Both the position numbers and the translations under genes were made by a program. From Orbicella franksi (taxonomy: Eukaryota): 64,000 nucleotides of DNA. Positions 1,044 through 13,730 of the stretch are shown piece after piece. The notes under the pieces were generated by a model. That model saw only the letters and a program-made list of their open reading frames with translations, did no database searches and was not told where the DNA came from. Within the stretch, counting starts at the first letter, position 1. Each line of letters begins with the position of its first letter. The stretch is taken from positions 24,986,001 to 25,050,000 of the forward strand of contig OZ116699.1 of NCBI GenBank assembly GCA_964199315.1, given 5' to 3'.

Positions 1044-1500
1044 GTGGTATGGTGACATCGACTTTGTCCCGTCTCCTGAGAGAAGTGCCGGGTGGGGGAG
1101 AATAGACCTTTTTTTTGTTGATAAAGAGTTGTTTCCCGGAATCGAAGTCTCTTGCAACCCAGTTATGTGATGTGAAGGTATCTATGCTCCGCCCTTCTCC
1201 TTCTTTCAAGATTTGGAAAAATGATTCCTTTCCGCCGTTGACATAGTAAAGCTGATTTCAAAGAAATTAGAATGCATGTTATATAAGTGTGACGTTATTG
1301 CTAGTACCAACACTGACTGATAGAAGATTGATAATAAATACAGTTATTACAGTAAAGTGGGTTGACATCTGTGATCACTGATCAATCTTCTTCTATTGTG
1401 AACGATTACAGAAACATCCACGTACTTAAAGGTTCTTCTCGATTGTAAATTTTTGACTTTTACATGTAATGGATTTTCCAACATTGCGTTTGTTTTAAAT
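1044..1500 (-). CDS. Two exons encoding a VHL beta-domain-like module (partial; gene continues beyond or towards the left edge)
   Basis: Exon 1044-1251 (acceptor tttgaaatcag, donor gtgagt) reads LYYVNGGKESFFQILKEGEGRSIDTFTSHNWVARDFDSGKQLFINKKKVYSPPPGTSLRRRDKVDVTIP. By eye it aligns to VHL [53 protein letters not shown]...ANITLP. Upstream exon 1410-1500 (acceptor ctttacag, donor gtaatc) reads FKTNAMLENPLHVKVKNLQSRRTFKYVDVS and joins in phase 0. Not in the ORF track. Confidence 0.7.
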
Positions 1501-1528
1501 CTGTAAAGTGGCTATTGCATCAGTACAC

Positions 1529-1738
1529 NNNNNNNNNNNNNNNNNNNNNNNNNNNNNNNNNNNNNNNNNNNNNNNNNNNNNNNNNNNNNNNNNNNNNNNN
1601 NNNNNNNNNNNNNNNNNNNNNNNNNNNNNNNNNNNNNNNNNNNNNNNNNNNNNNNNNNNNNNNNNNNNNNNNNNNNNNNNNNNNNNNNNNNNNNNNNNNN
1701 NNNNNNNNNNNNNNNNNNNNNNNNNNNNNNNNNNNNNN
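1529..1738. other. Assembly gap (N run)
   Basis: Run of N. Confidence 1.
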
Positions 1739-1815
1739 CGATCGATCGATTGATTGATTGACTGACTGACCGACTGACTGACTGATTGACTGGTTGATTG
1801 ATTGATTGATTGATT
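1739..1815. repeat. Compound tetranucleotide microsatellite (GATC/GATT/GACT)n
   Basis: Directly visible; abuts the gap. Confidence 0.95.
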
Positions 1816-2121
1816 ACAAGCACTCACATACAACTTACCCGCTTGATCATTAAATACAATAAAACTGGATACAAAATGAAAGATTGATAAAACAATCAAC
1901 AAGGAACATAATTCAACAAAACAAGACGTAAGCAACATTTAATAATGTCAAGGAAAGTAAACATTCACCTTTATCGCCCGATTTGCTTTGTTAGAGATTG
2001 TAATGTAAGAGCTTTCCGTACGAGCAGCTGCAGCGTGACTCGATCCTCCGTCAACTATAAAAGAGTGTAGTAATATGCGTAGATATCAACAGTATGTGTT
2101 CATGTACCCATCAAGAATATT

Positions 2122-2202
2122 CAGAAACTCTTTGGGCTCGTCACGCAGTCCTTCTTCGAAGATTGCGTGATGAACCCAAATAGCATCTGCGAAGGAGGCT
2201 GG
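2122..2202. mobile_element. Short hairpin MITE-like repeat
   Basis: Arms cagaaactctttgggctcgtcacgcagtccttc and gaagattgcgtgatgaacccaaatagcatctgcg are imperfect inverted repeats. Confidence 0.6.
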
Positions 2203-2344
2203 TCACCAACCGAAAGGAACATCAGTTCCATAAATAGATTTAACAGAATTCTGCCAAATAATATGCTTCTGCTCTAATATGCTTTGGGGTAATATGTTTG
2301 TGAATGGACACCAACAAGAAACATTTTTGTTGACACGGTCATAA

Positions 2345-2715
2345 ATTATATATTATATGGCTTGCTCCGTGAGCTGGCAAGATGACCGAATCCTGCGCCG
2401 TGATTGGCTACCCGAGCGGGCAAGGTGGCGCTATCTTGCCCGTTCGGAATTACCCGCTGTCTTCCACAAGAAAACAGTGTTCTTTTTCCATTAGGAGCCA
2501 TAATCGTTCCCCGATTATGGCTCCTGTTTTCCATATAATAAGTCCTTTATTGACCAAGCTAATGTTCGGTCAAGATGGCTGGATATTGGCCTCTTCTTTT
2601 TTTTCGCGAGTTCATGGACCTCGAATCTATCTCGGTCCATAAACACGCAAAAAAAGAACGAGGCCAATATCCAGCCGTCTTGGCCTTACACTTGGTCAAT
2701 AACCCATATATTGCT
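2345..2715. repeat. Dispersed repeat (probable non-autonomous TE); related partial copy at about 42604-42720
   Basis: tattatatggcttgctccgtgagctggcaagatgaccgaatcctgcgccgtgattggctac is matched by tattatatggctagctcggtgaacaggcaagatgaaccagatcctgtggtgtgattggctac in a SIRT1 intron. Confidence 0.7.
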
Positions 2716-2949
2716 CATGGTTGATAATGATGACGGCTTCGGGAGGATTCTAAACTTAAACCGTGAAAAGGGGTGTCATTGATTCTGCCTGCTGGTTTTC
2801 GTTTTAAGGAGGCAAGCAATAATTGTTTCAACTGGAGAGAATTGCAACTTGAAGTCAACCCAATGGCAACGACTCTCCGTTGGCTGATCATTAAAGCGAA
2901 TCACAGTAACATACGGTAGTGATTGACTGTGGGCAAAGCATACTTGTCC

Positions 2950-3078
2950 TTTAATTTGAAGCTGACTTCCACTCATTTTGTCGGAACGTCAGTCACCGTC
3001 TACAGTTCTTTTCAGGACTACCTTCGCCCGGACGATCACGCAAGACGAATTACTGATACTCCTGAGTTCAAACCATCA
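2950..3078 (+). mobile_element. Degenerate Penelope-like terminal-repeat fragment (inverted relative to the 50707-50910 copy)
   Basis: Its reverse complement aligns with 50707-50830 (ggtttgaac.caggagtatcagta.ttcg...tgaaaagaactgt...ggtgactgacgtt.cgacaa...gag.ggaagtca.cttca). PLE assignment is from recognition of the motif. Confidence 0.6.
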
Positions 3079-3498
3079 CTTCATTACAAATTGATCTGAG
3101 CCCGCCGTGCATGCAGGATGTAAATAGGCCTTATAGTTTACGAGTACAGCTGTAGTATCTTATTTTGCTGTTTTTATCCAACTTGATACACTTAGTTAGT
3201 AGTCGAAGTGGCGGGTGTCGATACCTCAAGTTTTACGGGTAATTTCTGAATACACCCAGGTAATATCCGAGAATTATCTTGCCCATTGAACATTACTTGA
3301 TTTTGTTTTAATCCAAACTGCAAGCATTTTTGTATTGCCAGTTCTTTTGTCGTACAAAAATTCTCAAAGTATTAAATACTGCTATAATTTACAAAGGTCT
3401 AGAATCGTCGGTTTTACACCGTCTCGCCGGATCATTTGTATGGTAATCATGTCTGGTATGAATTTTGTTTTTAGACAAATAATGAGACGTAAGGCCAA

Positions 3499-3606
3499 GT
3501 TCAGACGCCGTGCTTCACATGAGCCGAATCGAATGCAAATGAGAAAAATCCTTTGTTCTCCCTCATTAGCATTCGATTCGGCTCATGTGAAGTACGGCGT
3601 CTGAAC
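3499..3606. mobile_element. Hairpin MITE (about 108 bp)
   Basis: gttcagacgccgtgcttcacatgagccgaatcgaatgc.aatgag is inverted against ctcattagcattcgattcggctcatgtgaagtacggcgtctgaac. Confidence 0.85.
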
Positions 3607-4241
3607 CGGGCATAATCCACCTGGGTAAATAACATGCATGCCGCGAGGGAAAACTGCACGACGAACCGACTTTAGATCAGAAGATCGGATTTTGCCTCAA
3701 TTGATTAATCGCTTTAGACCTGAGTTTATAAAAGACCGTAACTAAAGATAGTCATCCGCCATTTGTCGGTCTCAGACGGCTTATCCGCTTGAGACAGATG
3801 GATTATTTTTAAACTCTAGTGTAAATAATTATGTTGGACCAAATTTGCGCAAAATGACCAAAACAGAAACAACAAATAAATTCTTCTCCGTGAAAAATTA
3901 TCTTTCGATACGATGTCACTTCCGCTAAATAGGCCATGCCTTGGTAACAATTTCAAGAGGACGTAAGCCCGATTTTATTTTCACCGAAACATTAATTGCT
4001 TTAGAGGTGAATGTGTTAGAAGGAGAAGCATACTTCCATCATTCCTCATCATCGCAATAAAAGCTGGGGCGAAAAGGATTAATCGTGTTCTGCTATCGGA
4101 TTTGCCAGGAAGAATATTACAGGCCAACCTTTTTTAATAATCATTCAGGGCACCTGATTTTAGCTTTATTTTTCTTGTTAAATAAGAATTTATTTAGTTA
4201 TTTTATTGCTCAGACTTCTAAACCAGAAAGGTTTAACAAAC

Positions 4242-7200
4242 CTTTCAGTCCGGTAGGGAAATTCTCCATTTTAAGTTCATCATACTGCAGGTTATGCTGG
4301 TCTTTGCGTTCCAGGACGGATTTTCTATACAAGAGATGTGGTCTACCAGGTCTCGTCCAACCGCGATGAAGTACAAGGCTTGAGTTTAACACGGGCTCGA
4401 TGTAAATCGTGTCATTTCCTAAATCTATGATTCCAACCTTAGAACAAAAAGAAAACAATTTCATTCTAGGATAAAAAAACTTCTTGTATGTATTTCGGCA
4501 CTGTCAATCTGCGATACGGAGCGTGACTTGAACGGCGGAAGCGGGTGGGAGGGGGAGGGGGGGGGGGCAGGGTGCGCTACAGCGGAAGATCTTAGCAGAG
4601 TGATTCGTACTTTAGAAAGTCGGCGATGGAAATGTAGATAGGTTAACTTTTAGCTAAATCACGTTATAAAAGACTTGACATAGCTGTTGATCGGAACCAG
4701 ACATAGCGGGAAAAAAATTTCTGACATCCAAGATAGATTGATTCACTTGACTTGTACAATACTAATGAGCCTGCGGTACTAGCTTCCAGAGGAGTTATGA
4801 TGTAACGCGCACGCGTAAAACAGAGTAAGCAACACTTACCAGTCCATCACAGTCACTTATGGCCACGCTGGTATGAAACGATTCTGTCTCGCCCACAAGG
4901 TAACAGTGAACGTCTGTGGAGACAGTTCTCTCAATTGTTCCATCCTCTTTATACCGCTCGATTGTAAAGTCCGATCCGAAAAGCTTCGTGTTTACTCTTA
5001 GTATCATTTTGATGGTCTTTCCTTTGAATTGGACCTGTTAAAAATAGAAAAGAGATTTACACAGAATGTTAAATAGAACGCTTTCCAGTTTCACTAGCGC
5101 TGTAAAAGAACATCAGAAAGAGTGATCTCGACGTAAATAACGCTACGGATAGCATTCCATTTCTAGTTCCTTCTGCTCCAGTATTTCTGCTACTCACATT
5201 TGGTGGTCGAACTAGAGTTCGTGCAAACTTATATATATATTGTTTTTCAATTGAATCTGAACATTACATGATTGCTCTCCTTCAATGTTGACCCTTCAGA
5301 GAGGCATTTTTGTGATACTTGCTGAAGGCAAACTGCACAGGAACAAGTTTTCCTTCACAAGTTTTAAAAAAGACACGTTATATTTACTCGTACGTACCGC
5401 TTGTACTGACGACGAAAGTAGGACACGTCATAAGTCACAAAACTTAGGAGGAGCTACAAGTTTTTCAGAATCTTCGTTTTGTGATATTCCGCTGCATATA
5501 GAGTATTTCAGCATCAACGAGACTTATTAATGGAATTTTTTAAATTTACGCAAAGAAGCAACAGTAACCCAAACCTTAGTGAAGATAACTTGCTGCTCGT
5601 TCCCAGAGAAAATATATTCTTTAACAAGGGAATCTGCAAGGGGGTTCTTGTTATTTCGGGTATCAGTTAAATTTTCGGCGAGTTCTCAGCAGTCAGTGAA
5701 TTTTGCTGATCTCAGATTTGAACTATCAATTGAAAATTTCATTCATGTCATTTCTCAGCTGAAAGTTACAATAATTATGACCAGTTCTCAGCTAGCGGTT
5801 AATAAGTCCATCCAGACTCCCTAAAACATTGTAATACCTCATAGATTATTGGCCCAGCCTCCTCAGTTACGCTCCGCCGACGACGCCGATGACTGGAAAG
5901 GGTAGTCACGTGGTCGGTCACCTGACCACGGTGATCTAACTCAGTCGGGTAAGTAATATCAAACTCCCCTAGAGAGTTGATCAGATGTTCTGTGAAATAA
6001 ATCAAAACATTATTGGGAAAGACCTCAAAGGTGCAGACTTATTCCAAATTAGTGTAGCACCAAGGACCCGGTTGTTTGTAAGCCGATTAATTTTACCTTG
6101 GGATCAAATACAATTTAGATTAGACTTAAAATACAGATATCTTCAAAAAATGTAGAACCGTCAGGAAGATGCCGAAATCAGTGTTGTTAGAAATTGAATT
6201 CAAGCGAATATGATTCTGGAATGGACTTTGAAATGTATGGTACTCGATCGTTGATCACTTCAACGTATTAAGAACTTTTTTTTTCACACAATTCAACTGA
6301 GTCTGATACGTGCCTGAGAGGGAGGATTTCCCTGGGACACGGGGTTAGTGGTAATGAAAAAGGGCCCTCATCCCCAGTCGATCGAGTAAGCATATTTGCC
6401 TCTGATTCGTCTCTCGTCTTCTCTCATCAAATCCTTGTAAGACGCGGGGTGAGATGGGAAGAATCCCCTCGTCAAAATAATTCAGTTGGATCTTCGATTA
6501 TTCCAACTCCTCAACCCCACTCCTCTTGTATTTGCCCATGTTTTGATAGTCATGTACTTCGAACTCGTTTCTTTAGAGCTCCTCGCTATTTCGAACTGTT
6601 TTATTCTAAATTCCATCGCGATTAACATCATCATGACATCAGACCAAGTGAGAATTATCACTGCTGGAACTTTACAATTTGGCTTTTTGGAACCTCATAA
6701 TTAACCTCGTCCTTGGGTGTTATATTCCGGCCCTTCCATTATGTTGATAACGTATAACACTAAAAGTAATTGTTATTTCCGCTATTTCGAAGCATTTTCC
6801 TTGCCCCCTTAGAGTTTGAAATTGTGGGGTTCAAATGAAGCGACATTGTGGAAGGTCGTCTGTGTACACAGGCTACCCAGTTGAAGGTTTTTATCATTTT
6901 TCGCAACATATTATTAAAGTGTATCTCACGTGTGAATAGTTCTTTAATGGTGATATCAAAGAAGGATAGTCCAAGAAGGCGGGGGTGCGCAGGTGGGGAG
7001 GGAGCGTGGGTGGGAAGGGTGCGCGGGTGGCGAGGGTGCGTGGGTGGCGAGGGAGCGTAGGTGGGGAAGGTGCGTGGGTGGGGAAGGTAGGTAGGTGGGG
7101 AGAGAGTGTGGGTTAGGAAGGCGAGGAAAGGCGTGTACTCGTGTTGACAATGATCACGTAATCTAAAACACCAGAAGACGTGAAATTTGCGTTCGAGTTT

Positions 7201-10200
7201 GCACGATGAGCTAGAATACTTAACTACATCAAGAAGGGAGGTAATAAATACTTAACACTAGGTAATAACTGGATTTACTAATAATCAAACACGTACAATG
7301 ATCCGGATTTTTCAGGAACATTGGAAGTACTTATTCTTGCTCTGGATTCCTCAGGACATATTTTGCAAGTGGCGAAAATTAAATTAGCTTTGACCCGGAA
7401 ATGGTGTACTTAAATAGTAATCAACTGAATTGGTCGTCTGGGTTCATGGCCCGCTCCATTAATATATAACAGCTGAACGTAAACGATGAGTGACAACTTC
7501 CTGAGACACGCGAATATCTCTGTAATCGGAGAAATACAGATTTCCTCTACGATAATAATTAGCATGGGGTCCTTTAAAGGGTCAAATTTGTTCTCAATCC
7601 CAGGTACCGGAGAATTTTATGAACGAGGAAAATTAAACGTTGCTTCTGTCAAATACACTTTGTACACTGAAGTGAGAGTACTAGATTTCTGATACCTTCT
7701 GTTGTGTTAAACTGATTTAAGGAAGAGAGCACAAGGCACAAAATCAGTGGCAAGTTTTTCCGTTCTCCGTGATTTTTCTGGAATCTGCAGCGTCATTGCA
7801 AGCGTAAGCACACTGAAAAATGTTAATGTGAGCGGGGATGACCCACTCAAGCATAGCCAAATTATCATTGAGAATTCACGTAAATTTTAGTGGTCTTTAG
7901 TTCTGCTATCACCTTGATCGGCGGCGATGCAAATGAATCTGGATGCAGATCTTAACATCTAGCAGGACAGACAATGAGTTTTTCGTACTTAACAGTAAAT
8001 CTTTGTCCTATCTCAGAGCTAAAAATCAAACAAAGCCTCGCTCGATTTGGTGATATCGCAGCCATTGGATTAAACTCAGGAGTCGTACAACTATCTACAT
8101 GCAATTTCTGCATACAAAATTAAGATAAAAAGCATATTACATATTTTTTTCTTTGTTTAGATAGCACTGTATGTTAATGTAAAGCCAAATATGTAGCAAA
8201 GTAATGATAGTTAACGTCAAGCATGATACGATATCATAAATAAGTAATTCGAACTCGGTTATTTTCGGAAATCCCTGTTATTTCGAACTCTGAACTATTT
8301 CCCTTGGATTTTCCTTCAGTCATTTAGGGTATGGACCACCCTAATTAACTTAGTGTTAGCTTGGTGATATCCTCTGTAAATATTGTTTTTATTATTATTG
8401 TTTATCTAGTAAGTTGTGCTAATATAGTGGAACCCCTCCATACGGACCGCCCCGTTAAAACGACCACCCCTTTATTACGACCACTTTCTTTATGGCCCGA
8501 GCAAAAGCCCACACATTCTCCTATCTGAAAACCCCGTTAATCCGACCATCCCGTTATTACGACCACTTTCTTTATGGCCCGAGCAAAAGCCCACACATTC
8601 TCCTATCTGAAAACCCCGTTAATCCGACCATCCCGTTATTACGACCAACGACCACCTTTTGGAGTGCGCAGTCTTTATTTTCTTTATAAAAGTATCCCGT
8701 TAGTACGACCGGTTAAATTGACTGGTGAGGAAGCTGAATGACGACAGACACAATCTGGCAAATAACGGCTCTAACGGACACTTCACAAGAGGCCATATCC
8801 TGTTGAGAAACTGAAAGACGTCATTGTTTTTTCGCATTACATGTACTAGGTTTTGTCCAGTTGCAATGAATTGCTGTTGTAAGGTTAAAGAATAATTGTA
8901 AAAAGGTTGATTTATAGCGGAATTAAAGGTATTCATGTGCGTGTTGCACCATAATGCCGTGACCCTACCTCGTTAACACGACCACCCCGTAATACGACAA
9001 ATTTTTCATAGCCCGAAGGTGGTCACATTAACGGGGTTCCACTGTACTGTTAAATTGTGAACTGTGTTTACTTAGTTCTGTAAGTAGAGTAAGTATCACA
9101 AGCAATGTGTTTTTAGAAGCTATTCCATTATTGCAAGTAATGTTGCTAATGAAGGTAATATTTGTATTGCAAGCAACGTTACTGTTGCATTTAAACAAAA
9201 AATCTTTGAACTGATATCCCAAACCAGACTAGTATCGACTACTGTTTGTTAATACCTTGAGCTTGTGCCAAGATATGATTGTGCCTATGACAGCGCTCTA
9301 ATCTTTGGTTCTACCTATTCGTCTATCAATTTATCTTTCGATCTGTTTATTTATTTATTCATTTATTTCTTTGTTTATTTATTTATTTATTTATTTATCT
9401 ACTTATTTCCTCGCATCATTAACAGTACATGCAAGAACAAGCCTAATGTAAAAGCGAAGGGTAAATAGGTTATCTATCTCTGAGGCGGGTCTTATCTTGC
9501 TACTTTGATAATAATGACAGTGAGGATTATAAACCTGACTTGTATAACTCCACGATCAACTTATGCCTTTTATATGGCGATCTAACCCTGCACGGCACAG
9601 TGAACACTTAGAAAGCAAAGTCAAAGCGGCGACCTGACCAAGAACAAAAGACTAACAGCTGTCGCCCACAGTCGCTGTCCACAGTCAGAAAAAAGGTTAT
9701 AGTTTTTACAGTCCAGCCAGAGAAAGACAAATTTATCTATATCATCTATCAAATCAATCTATAGCTTTCCATCTAACCTCAACCTGACAGCTTGCCACCA
9801 AACTCCGATAAATTACACATGTAAAGTTGATTTCTAATGGTTTCTAAACGACTGAACCACGAAAATACACGCACACCCGAGCTAACGCCAAGCCCGGGAA
9901 AACGAGCCCGAATATTGAGTCGATGGTGCGAGCTTTTACATGTAAACTGAATCACAGTGCACAGTCAAGCAAAACTCATATGCAAAACCAAAGGAATCAG
10001 TGAACTAATACAATGAATCAATCAGAACTCGCAGCGACGTAGCTAGGGGGTCCTGCGATTCCCGTGACCCCCCCCCCCTTATGTAGTTTTTTTTTTTTAA
10101 GCAAACAACTGAAAACGCGGGAAAACGCGCAGAGCCACGACTGATTGAAAAAAAAGCATGTTAGCTCTGATTGGCCAAGGGAAGTTGAGGAATTTTTAAA

Positions 10201-12864
10201 CGATTAATGGTCGAGTTCATTTAATTTAAGGCAAAAGTTCTTATTATAGAGCCTAAACTCTCTAAAAAGATGATAGGTGGTTATAAGTTGAGCTACAAGC
10301 AAAGCTTGCGTGCAGACCGTCAATTTCCTCTCTTACTCTGATAAGAAACAAACAAACAAAAAAAAACCTTGTGACAAAGAGGGTCAATGAGGCTCACTGT
10401 GAGTTAGCCGCGATTTGCCCACCTCACCGCCGGAAATGGTAATACAAACTAGACTATACTCAGGCTGTGTCACGGTTTCCGCATCTTGAAAAGTTACGTT
10501 TAGCCTAAATTCTTCAAGTTCGTCGTTTGTAATCCGTGTCAGTCTTTTCCATCCTTAACCATCCTCGTTCCTTTATGGTTTATTATTATCTCTTTGGTGT
10601 TCTTCTATCTTACTGTAAACTATTATTTTCAGCTACGTTTCCTCCAATCAGTTTAAATGTAATTTTTGCGTGGCCAAAACTGATACGGTAAATGAAGGAG
10701 TTCCTTTAATGTTAACCATGGAAACGAGGGATATCATGTTCAGTCTCCTGACATCTTGCAAAATTGCGGGAAGATCACCACAGAGCGGAAATATCTTCAA
10801 GTAACACTAAGGAGAGATGGTTTAAAAATCGTCCTGGAGGGGCGAACCTTCTTTGAAGATCTCAGATTGAGTCTTGCACGATTTTAGACTTGGAAAACTA
10901 ATGAAACACAGAAAAATGAGATTCGTCGAAGAGGCTTCCGAGATCTCGAAATCAAATCAAACGTTTCTGAGACCCAAGAAGTTCCAGGTTCCAATCGCCA
11001 ACTCCATGGTAGCCTGTCAAAGTAGGTGGTATCGGAAAGGAAATTTGCCTTGATGAAAACAGGCAGGTAACATCTTGTCCAGCAACTCCCGGCGATAATT
11101 TTTTTCATGCAATCTCCAACGCAACACTTCGTTTACAGACGAATTGTAAGAAAACATTAACACGCTTCCACTGGGATTGGACATGTAACCGTGACTGCAA
11201 AATTTTGAAAAGTGCAAGATTGTTTTTCTCAGCTCGTCTCGCAACGCACAAGCTGAGAGTTTGCTGACCTCGAAGGGTCAAGAGACCCAAAGGGACGGAT
11301 AAATTATGAGAGTCTGGCTTTTTTATTGATCTTGGTGGAAGATTCAAACGAGTTGGATTCGTGGAGAGCCGAACTCCCATTCCAAATACGCACACCGTTT
11401 TTAAGGCGTTAAATTTCATTGAACATAAAAGGTAATTTCTACTCGTATTATCTCATCGATATTATGTAACCATGACCTTGAAAAAGAGCAAATTTAATTT
11501 TTCTCTTTTTGTTAACTTGATATGGAACTTCGCCAAAAAGGAAAGGCAACCCGTTTCACATGGTTCTAGTTCAACATCTTTCAGCTGCAACTTTTGCGAA
11601 CAGGCTGAGATTTCAAACTGACAAGGGCAACTCTTTAAATTGCGACCTTTGCTATCAGAATGTATAGAACGCACATGCACTTAGAAATAAATTGACCAAG
11701 GTATCCGTTGCTTTGCGTGTTTCCAAAAAATTCCAAAATTTAGCTGTCGACGCTAATTAGGAACGGCTATGGTATACTAGGTAGTCTGCCTCAGTAACAA
11801 ATATAATGGACGAGGAAAATCAGCAACACTCCCTCAGTGTTACCGGATTGGTTTCTTGAAAGAAATTTACGTGCCTCAGCGTCGTTCGAATACACCTACA
11901 TTACGTAAAGAAATTCGTGTTGTAGTTGTAATATCAATTAATATGATCGTCACAAAATAACCCATCTTTGACCTTTCGTACTACTGCTTTCAAGAAAGTG
12001 ACAGAATGCCTTGATTCCATGTCATTATCCCAGCATTGTCAATACTGGCCGTGTTATTGACGAGATGAAATTTAATGTTCAACCACTTAGCTAAAGTAGC
12101 GAAAGACAAACCGACAATAAACAGTTCCTCTTTGTTTCTCAGTGGAACCGTAACGTGATTTCCGTGAAGCGCATCGAGTGATACGAGGCGTGCTATCCAA
12201 AAACTGATGGTTGATTTCAGTCTGCCAACTTGTAATGTTATGTTTGCTAAATTAATAGTTTGCGACCTGAATCGACCACCGTCCTAACTTCCTACAACTG
12301 CGACACTTGGGGTGAGGTTTCCTGAGTGCTGTAATCAATGAGTGTAGCGAAGGATCTGGTTGACAGCGACATCTTCTAGTTTGCCGTGTTTGCTGCTGCA
12401 GCGTTTTTGCAACAAATACAGCAGAAATAATTGTTAATACGGTATTTGCACTAATCGGATTCTATGAAGATTCCAGACCTTCCAGATTATTGTTGTATAC
12501 CTTGGGCTAACGTGAATCCGATCGGGAAGATTTGTGACGGCTTGATAAAATTTTAGTGACCGACTTGAATAACCTTACCTTGCTTTTCTTCTGCGCTGCG
12601 ATGATTCATTTTGCCCTGGGAATTATAGAAAAAACACGACGTTAAAAAGGGTCGCCAAATTGCTGACCGACCCAACGGTAGGAGAAAATTGCACGCACCT
12701 TCTTTGCGCTGAAAAATGTTTATCGTAAGGTAGGATGAATTAGTACTTACCGTCTTATAGTAGCCTGCTTCGGTCCATGTACACAAACAGAGGAGTGACC
12801 AAATCACGATGAAGTCCCACGTACTACAAGATATCATCGCTACGGAGCTTCCTCTAGAGCTCAT
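4242..12864 (-). CDS. ADAMTS/ADAM (M12B reprolysin) family secreted metalloprotease, signal peptide and prodomain exons (5' part)
   Basis: Exon 12751-12864: MSSRGSSVAMISCSTWDFIVIWSLLCLCTWTEAGYYKT (signal peptide-like). Exon 5838-5989: HLINSLGEFDITYPTELDHRG...HRRRRRSV...PIIYE. Exon 4840-5034: VQFKGKTIKMILRVNTKLFG...HCYLVGE...VAISDCDGL. Exon 4242-4437: VGIIDLGNDTIYIEP...PHLLYRKS. All have GT-AG boundaries; these are Pep_M12B_propep hallmarks (CxYxG, SxCxGLxG, YxIEP, HxxYR). Phases agree from exon 2 to exon 4, but exon 1 (ends phase 0) and exon 2 (starts phase 1) disagree. No catalytic HExxH motif was seen in the window. Confidence 0.85.
6978..7130 (+). repeat. G-rich degenerate minisatellite (about 18-19 bp unit)
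   Basis: Repeated gggtgcgtgggtggcga / ggtggggaagg variants. Confidence 0.8.
8425..9044. mobile_element. Tc1/mariner-type MITE with internal 82-bp tandem duplication
   Basis: Ends (t/c)agtggaacccc and ggggttccactg flanked by TA. Internal ttattacgacc unit starts at 8472, 8554 and 8636. Related short copy at 37171-37326. Confidence 0.8.
9345..9408. repeat. (TTTA)n microsatellite
   Basis: Directly visible. Confidence 0.9.
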
Positions 12865-13730
12865 AAAACCAGTCTCACGAGAATTTGCCGAGATTTCGAG
12901 CAATTATCTGTGACTCGCCGTCGGTCTGCCAAATCTGTATTTAAACAACGCTGAAGGCCACTGAATGACGTCACATCCGCCGTTCTCCATCCGTTGTGGC
13001 ACGTAATTGGTTAATATGTCGTGATGAAATAAAAATCTGTCAGCAGATGCGGCATAGCTAGTCGAGGCCAAAAAAAATCATCACTCAACATGTGTGAAAC
13101 GGTGCTCGTTGGTTACTTTATTTGATTTGATCACGTTTATTGGAGAAAAACGGATGTAACCAAGAAAACAGGCTTTGGGTCTCCATAGAATTATCTGTGT
13201 ATGGTGAGTGGGAAGTGTTGAATCTTACAGAGCAGGAGATATAAAGTGGATAGAGTTTGCTTGTTTAGGTCAAGAACATTGGAGAATTTTCCGGTAGACT
13301 TTGCCAATGTGTAAAGAGCAAACTGAAATGGGGTTTTATACCATATTAGATGGCTTTTAGGCCAAAGCGTTGAAGCACATACCGTTTATGGGAATTTAGG
13401 CGGTGACTCAAAAGAAGGAGTGGATCAGTCGCCCAGAGGGCAAGTGGCTGAGTCGGAAGGAGCTGAAAGGGTCTGCAGTCGGCCTCCGTTGGATGTGGAA
13501 AGGAGGCGTGTTAAGAGGATTTAGAAACTGACTGTAGGTTGGGAATGCCTCCGGTAGGCCAACGAGCCGGAATTCTGCCATGGCAACACAGCACAGCATC
13601 AAGAAAGGATGAGGTCATCCTGGTTCTCTTGACAGCATAGCATAGCTTTCATACAATGTACTGGGTTATGGTTGTAGGGTATTGACAGGGCCCGTCTGCA
13701 GTTAACTGAAAAATAACATTTTTTTTCATA

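Follow-up and report, generated by a model that had tools for sequence, protein, structure and literature searches.

We report a coral ADAMTS gene in which two tandem modules resembling the beta domain of pVHL are placed between the prodomain and the reprolysin catalytic domain. The gene was encountered in a 64,000-nucleotide stretch of Orbicella franksi DNA (hereafter the window; G000:C2:24986001-25050000 in a 497-Mb genome), where it is encoded on the minus strand and exits at the left end, and a further 30 kb to the left of the window were added to the analysis as L004, L005 and L006. Positions without a prefix are those of the window. This is one minus-strand ADAMTS gene, which extends from position 12864 leftwards to approximately 27.5 kb past the window start, and the order prodomain, two VHL-beta-like modules, reprolysin catalytic domain is found on one mRNA. 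We regard this architecture as very nearly certain.

Splicing of the modules into the protease transcript

The joining of the modules to the protease is observed directly in RNA. The RNA runs in which exons of the window occur carry coral or coral-metagenome labels. Logan contigs of four RNA runs from four studies (X1, X6, X9 and X13, comprising two poly(A) coral libraries and two coral metatranscriptomes) were aligned to C2:24984601-24990500 (L008), and all of the RNA joints carry CT..AC ends, corresponding to GT..AG on the minus strand. The joint from prodomain exon 4 to the first exon of module 1 (V1a; 4242 to 2054, or L008 5642/3454) and the joint from V1a to the second exon of this module (V1b; 1969 to 1251) are present in 4/4 runs, and X13, X6 and X9 additionally contain those from V1b to the first exon of module 2 (V2a; 1044 to L004 9628) and from V2a to its second exon (V2b; L004 9543 to 8945). 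Thus, three runs each yield all four joints, and X1 yields the first two. Furthermore, a single 5625-nucleotide poly(A) contig includes prodomain exon 4 together with all four module exons, preceded by 538 nucleotides and followed by 4307. On the catalytic side, two runs have a loose contig end at the V2b donor whose reverse complement is the start of catalytic exon 1, the sole mismatch being two adjacent letters that are swapped (GA in the contig, AG in the genome). A loose contig end at the exon 4 acceptor likewise corresponds to the end of prodomain exon 3.

An earlier, sequence-only reading of this DNA had suggested that VHL-like exons might be spliced into an extracellular protease, and the GT..AG joints and the 5625-nucleotide contig bear this out. 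It had also envisaged a single VHL-like insert with its first half in an exon at about 1500-1425, and a transcript running from 4242 through 1500 to 1251. An insert is indeed present between the prodomain and the catalytic domain, but it consists of two modules rather than one, and the prodomain is indeed linked to 1251, but by way of 2054-1969 and not through 1500-1425. The RNA joints identify 2054-1969 as the actual first half of module 1, and this exon parallels the first exon of module 2. As for 1500-1425, it takes part in no RNA joint, offers no GT donor in the right frame, and resembles the true first-half exons at the DNA level only as far as shuffled sequences do; it is probably a chance open frame.

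The exon phases are compatible with this arrangement throughout. Both module exon pairs are entered and left in phase 1, and the donor of prodomain exon 4 and the first catalytic acceptor are in phase 1 as well, so the modules constitute two symmetric phase 1-1 cassettes within an otherwise single phase-1 intron. From prodomain exon 2 up to where the Cys-rich domain starts, the spliced frame stays open for 790 amino acids, and every splice site is canonical. An assembly gap at 1529-1738 lies inside an intron that is removed, and the reading frame is therefore unaffected by continuity across the gap.

Identity, fold and pocket of the VHL-like modules

Each module is encoded by two exons, a short first exon for strand 1 (…SYITISNKANRAIK and …SHITFINKSNRFVK) and a longer second exon that begins LYYVNGG or LYYIEEG. 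The second exon of module 1 (1251-1044), which the sequence-only reading had aligned to the VHL beta sandwich by eye, is a 70-residue open frame that matches PF01847 at 31.2 bits (E 2.2e-7; curated cut-off 21), and the second exon of module 2 matches at 29.9 bits against the same cut-off. A genome-wide scan with PF01847 yielded only six places, two of which are these exons. When a profile of both second exons was compared with all PDB sequences, 24 distinct sequences were matched, all of them pVHL (E 4e-5 to 2e-4). An AlphaFold2 model of the module 1 second exon has a pLDDT of 87, and pVHL accounts for all of its best 50 Foldseek matches in the PDB (TM by query 0.76-0.84, root mean square deviation ~2 A). 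The top matches of the same model in a search of AlphaFold DB clusters are VHL-domain proteins. The Pfam, PDB and fold results all point to VHL, in agreement with the original assignment.

In the pVHL-HIF structures, hydroxyproline is held by Ser111, His115, Trp117, Tyr98 and Trp88. Alignment to human pVHL chains with HMMER places Thr25, His29 and Trp31 of the module on Ser111, His115 and Trp117, and Phe12 on Tyr98; by extension of this alignment, Tyr2 falls on Trp88. Both modules have Thr, His, Trp, Phe and Tyr at pVHL positions 111, 115, 117, 98 and 88, the first three lying within DTFTSHNW in module 1. Across 34 aligned relatives, Thr25 never varies and the conservation of His29 and Trp31 is 90% or higher, and every coral module examined retains the equivalents of Ser/Thr111 and His115. 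Neither module is followed by an alpha domain or BC box. Both end in ...TIP or ...TVP and are succeeded by a linker and then the next module or the catalytic domain. Consequently, the modules cannot recruit Elongin C and Cullin-2 or act as E3 receptors.

The ordinary VHL genes of this genome are located on contig C10, where L013 5036-5398 and L014 5004-5405 appear to be canonical VHL first exons that encode the whole beta domain without an intron, seemingly as two VHL paralogues. A separate locus, L011 (G000:C4:15111839-15113858, minus strand), contains two adjoining VHL-like frames of 181 and 163 amino acids (7839-8384 and 9367-9858) with Pfam scores of 25.7 and 35.2 bits, and in one of the two a Phe replaces the pocket Trp.

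Remaining domains and layout of the gene

The sequence-only reading had suggested looking to the left of the window for an HExxHxxGxxH motif, and the catalytic domain was found there, approximately 2.2 kb past the window edge. Its zinc site (HExxHxxGxxHD) reads HETGHTLGMEHD and is split across exons L004 5933-5828 and 5342-5199, with a Met-turn (IMAP) downstream. The Reprolysin Pfam match is weak (17.8 bits, one exon). Matches above the respective cut-offs were obtained for ADAMTS_CR_2 (28.0 bits), TSP_1 (29.6 bits), ADAMTS_spacer1 (26.5 bits) and TSP1_ADAMTS (45.4 bits); the ADAMTS_CR_3 match is sub-threshold, and PLAC, at 24.1 bits, is just under its cut-off of 26.4 and is followed by a stop. 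As read from the genomic sequence, the disintegrin-like, TSP1 and Cys-rich exons continue in one open frame after the catalytic domain. The spacer, further TSP1, MAM and PLAC exons are on the same strand and were assigned by Pfam, and they are candidate parts of the same mRNA. Two MAM domains are present among these ancillary exons (L005 9850-7355, and L005 969-356 with L006 9506-9303, minus strand; Pfam scores up to 67.6 bits), the first of them between the two halves of the Cys-rich domain. We know of no ADAMTS with MAM domains.

Upstream of the modules, four minus-strand exons had been proposed in the sequence-only reading to encode a signal peptide and an M12B prodomain. The exons themselves stand (Table 1). 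The Pep_M12B_propep (PF01562) matches of exon 2 (profile 1-32, 17.1 bits) and exon 3 (profile 53-91, 20.9 bits) are collinear and both below the Pfam cut-off of 23.7. Exon 1 encodes 38 amino acids with the hydrophobic core FIVIWSLLCLCTW, and a TTTAAATA box is located nearby at 12948-12941. The stretch 12751-12905 is wholly present in 15 RNA runs, among which X13, X6 and X9 also carry a module exon. The donor of exon 1 is in phase 0 and its joining to the strong acceptor at 5989 would lead to a stop. If the weaker acceptor at 6023 is used instead, the frame is restored, and the agreement with the 538-nucleotide 5' part of the long contig is also better.

With respect to proteolytic processing, an RRRRR|S site is present early in the prodomain, and the motif RX[KR]R is absent between module 2 and the catalytic domain both here (...ITVPSTVSLPDMKFPAMLKTKPKYIEVMA) and in the coral scaffolds L015 and L016. 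A basic cluster, SLRRRD, occurs in the module 1 loop before the last strand (1063-1080). Among relatives, this loop reads RRKR in P0016, RNRHR or RERHR in others, and AKKPAN in P0009. The basic loop may be a lineage-specific convertase site.

Table 1. Exons and other features of the prodomain and module region (positions in the window unless prefixed with L004)
Feature	Position	Strand	Evidence
Exon 1, coding part; start codon and signal-peptide-like N-terminus	12751..12864	-	read from sequence
Prodomain exon 2 (EFDITYPTELDH..., RRRRR|S)	5838..5989, start may be 6023	-	Pep_M12B_propep, splice sites, frame
Prodomain exon 3 (...VHCYLVGE...VAISDCDGL)	4840..5034	-	Pep_M12B_propep
Prodomain exon 4 (GIIDLGNDTIYIEPV...PTGLK), phase-1 donor	4242..4437	-	RNA joint, 4 runs
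Module 1 first exon (V1a), beta-strand 1 SSYITISNKANRAIK, phase 1 in / 0 out	1969..2054	-	RNA joints on both sides, 4 runs
Assembly gap, within the intron between the two module 1 exons	1529..1738	.	spanned by RNA joint 1969 to 1251
Earlier-proposed exon, unused in observed RNA	1425..1500	-	no joint, no in-frame GT donor
Module 1 second exon (V1b), VHL beta strands 2-7, phase 0 in / 1 out	1044..1251	-	PF01847, PDB, fold, RNA joints on both sides
Module 2 first exon (V2a)	L004 9628-9543	-	RNA joints
Module 2 second exon (V2b)	L004 8945-8741	-	PF01847, 29.9 bits; 2.2 kb left of exon 1251-1044

Several repeats were noted in and around the introns. A (tcaa/tcag)n microsatellite at 1739-1810 abuts the assembly gap and may be its cause. 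The intron between exon 4 and module 1 has a near-perfect inverted repeat at 3500-3605 with arms of approximately 35 bases (…cacatgagccgaatcgaatgc… and …gcattcgattcggctcatgtg…). The intronic stretch 2344-2737 (L008 3744-4137) is covered by RNA contigs to a depth of thousands, with numerous short joints, and inverted copies of a ggccaatatccagcc... motif stand on either side of it. Rather than belonging to the gene, this stretch is probably a repeat that is dispersed and transcribed. A short palindromic repeat at 247-515 matches on both strands and resembles a miniature inverted-repeat transposable element (MITE); most of the 93 genome matches listed fall on it, at 70-80% identity.

Conservation and occurrence in other genomes

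The order of module and catalytic domain recurs in five contigs from other organisms, and several other corals retain the open frames, at 50-60% protein identity, and the splice sites. In the databases, the nearest relatives are single-exon open reading frames (ORFs) on genomic contigs of other corals and include both module types. Among the coral scaffolds, L016 has the counterparts of V1b, V2a and V2b and then catalytic exon 1, in that order, L015 has the counterpart of V2b and then five catalytic exons, and L007 has those of V1b and V2a, with the splice sites kept in all three. In L017 and L018, a catalytic exon is preceded by a module of a third type. A spliced RNA fragment of 264 amino acids, P0045 (L010), has a module running straight into a reprolysin domain; it has no match in this genome and must come from another organism, and a word-index search with it returned only P0045 itself. 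In a phylogenetic tree, the ADAMTS-type modules are split from canonical VHL with 98/98 support, and the V1 and V2 types form separate groups, implying that the module duplication predates the sampled lineages.

VHL beta domains were also found in multi-domain and secreted-looking proteins of other kinds, namely cystatin+VHL, VHL+ricin lectin and SAM-TIR-VHL proteins and ten-repeat arrays. P0001, P0003 and P0013 include proteins of approximately 2000 amino acids with nine or ten tandem VHL beta domains and a SAM-SAM-TIR protein with three C-terminal VHL domains. Judging from such domain assignments, reuse of the VHL fold is far wider than work on the E3 ligase would lead one to expect, and the fold is not confined to that ligase. 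The sequence-only reading had taken the pVHL beta fold to be intracellular, which is too narrow a view of the fold, as the databases include proteins that combine a signal peptide with a VHL domain.

Proposed function and alternative explanations

The best overall explanation, which we consider on balance probable, is a VHL-module ADAMTS whose modules would serve as a collagen-docking exosite. Because the residues by which pVHL holds 4-hydroxyproline are retained, the modules may bind hydroxyproline or collagen, a tentative proposal that we stop just short of calling probable. In this mechanism, the modules would presumably stay on the mature enzyme, from whose catalytic domain they are separated by no furin-type site, and they would dock the protease on hydroxyproline-bearing, non-helical or unfolded collagen chains, much as gelatin-binding inserts do in MMP-2 and MMP-9. 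According to a review (PMC7619536), pVHL directly binds unfolded collagen IV chains in a 4Hyp-dependent manner. A number of observations weigh against this explanation. Trp88 and Tyr98 of pVHL correspond to Tyr and Phe in the modules, and the pocket His and Trp are at the same time part of the fold's structural core, such that their conservation is no proof of ligand specificity. pVHL takes extended peptides, not triple helices, and native collagen may not be the ligand. In addition, the AlphaFold2 model spans only the second exon of module 1, the retention of the modules on the secreted enzyme is deduced from motifs and the zymogen processing site is only putative, a module-skipping isoform would remain in frame and may exist, and the signal-peptide exon, with its mismatched phase-0 donor, is a candidate first exon.

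Three other explanations have to be set beside the collagen-docking exosite. It is conceivable, if unlikely, that the modules are a prodomain extension that aids folding or latency, is cleaved off or inactive once the enzyme has been activated, and plays no part in the choice of substrate. The modules are located where a prodomain usually ends, the usual prodomain-catalytic boundary is without a site, and the basic RRR loop of module 1 (RRKR in P0016) could be a convertase site. However, this loop is not conserved as RX[KR]R, as illustrated by AKKPAN in P0009, there is no cleavage motif between module 2 and the catalytic domain here or in L015 and L016, and the conservation of the pocket residues is stricter than a spacer would need. 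Less probable again is that the modules are adaptors for a non-hydroxylated ligand, such as another matrix protein or an inhibitor, with the pocket kept for fold stability. Against this, Ser/Thr111 and His115, the hydroxyl hydrogen-bonders of pVHL, are kept in all coral modules examined, and the extracellular matrix near secreted ADAMTS is rich in 4-hydroxyproline; the replacement of Trp88 and Tyr98 and the occurrence of VHL domains in cystatin+VHL, VHL+ricin lectin and SAM-TIR-VHL proteins, which have no evident hydroxyproline ligand, argue in its favor. We consider it very improbable that the VHL-like exons are non-functional exonised sequence or a separate gene nested in an ADAMTS intron, the latter having been the alternative offered in the sequence-only reading. 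Such a gene would account for the position of the exons within a 6.4-kb interval between the prodomain and catalytic exons and for the stop that is reached two codons past module 2 if the last intron is retained, but it is contradicted by RNA contigs that splice the modules to the prodomain and catalytic exon, by phases that are compatible throughout, and by the conservation of open frames and splice sites in several corals.

Significance

We found no report of VHL modules in ADAMTS or other metalloproteases in the full-text literature searched. A search of 1.84 billion representative proteins returned no full-length ADAMTS with VHL modules; the only reprolysin-bearing match was the P0045 fragment, and the others were single-exon ORFs from genomic contigs and unrelated VHL-repeat proteins. 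The search of AlphaFold DB clusters similarly returned VHL-domain proteins and no ADAMTS. We found no prior description of ADAMTS and VHL joined in the literature or databases searched, although each family is separately well studied. Irrespective of ligand, the gene provides a clean example of exon shuffling, with two phase 1-1 cassettes in a phase-1 intron that are conserved across several corals.

The architecture suggests a protease aimed at hydroxylated collagen. If the modules do bind hydroxyproline, they would constitute a natural secreted hydroxyproline-binding domain and a new way to aim a matrix protease at collagen, and they would place the debated pVHL-collagen IV interaction in an evolutionary setting. 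A more specific scenario, which is possible but which we doubt somewhat more than binding itself, is that the VHL beta fold is an extracellular 4-hydroxyproline reader hard-wired to a matrix protease, by which corals would cut hydroxylated, unfolded collagen. In that case, coral collagen recognition would employ the same chemistry that animals use intracellularly for oxygen sensing, and collagen recognition by the VHL fold would appear to be ancient rather than a side activity of the human protein.

Comparison with known systems

The coral gene shares with other ADAMTS the zinc site, the Met-turn, the disintegrin-like and Cys-rich domains, the central TSP1 and the spacer, and it has in addition candidate exons for more TSP1 repeats and a C-terminal PLAC, a putative M12B prodomain and a signal-peptide-like exon upstream. 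It differs from them in having two VHL-beta modules between the prodomain and the catalytic domain, in lacking a furin-type site at the prodomain-catalytic boundary, and in the MAM exons of its ancillary region. ADAMTS2, ADAMTS3 and ADAMTS14 are procollagen N-proteinases, ADAMTS enzymes that are devoted to collagen precursors and possess a PLAC domain, but they have no VHL-like module. With pVHL, the substrate receptor of Cullin-2, the modules have in common the beta-sandwich, the PF01847 match and the pocket Ser/Thr111, His115 and Trp117 with aromatics at 88 and 98. Unlike pVHL, they lack the alpha domain and BC box and hence Elongin C binding, they occur in a secreted rather than a cytosolic context, and they are present as two tandem copies; in contrast to the pVHL genes L013 and L014 of the same genome, each module is split by an intron. 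The database proteins P0028, P0030 and P0034, which have signal peptides, resemble the coral protein as secreted-looking users of the VHL beta domain with the T..H.W motif, but they are without a protease domain and are probably microbial. The proposed functional analogy is to MMP-2 and MMP-9, members of family M10 in which fibronectin type II inserts sit inside the catalytic domain and bind denatured collagen. Both these enzymes and the coral ADAMTS are metalloproteases with added modules, whereas the coral modules have a different fold and precede the catalytic domain, and the coral enzyme belongs to another protease family.

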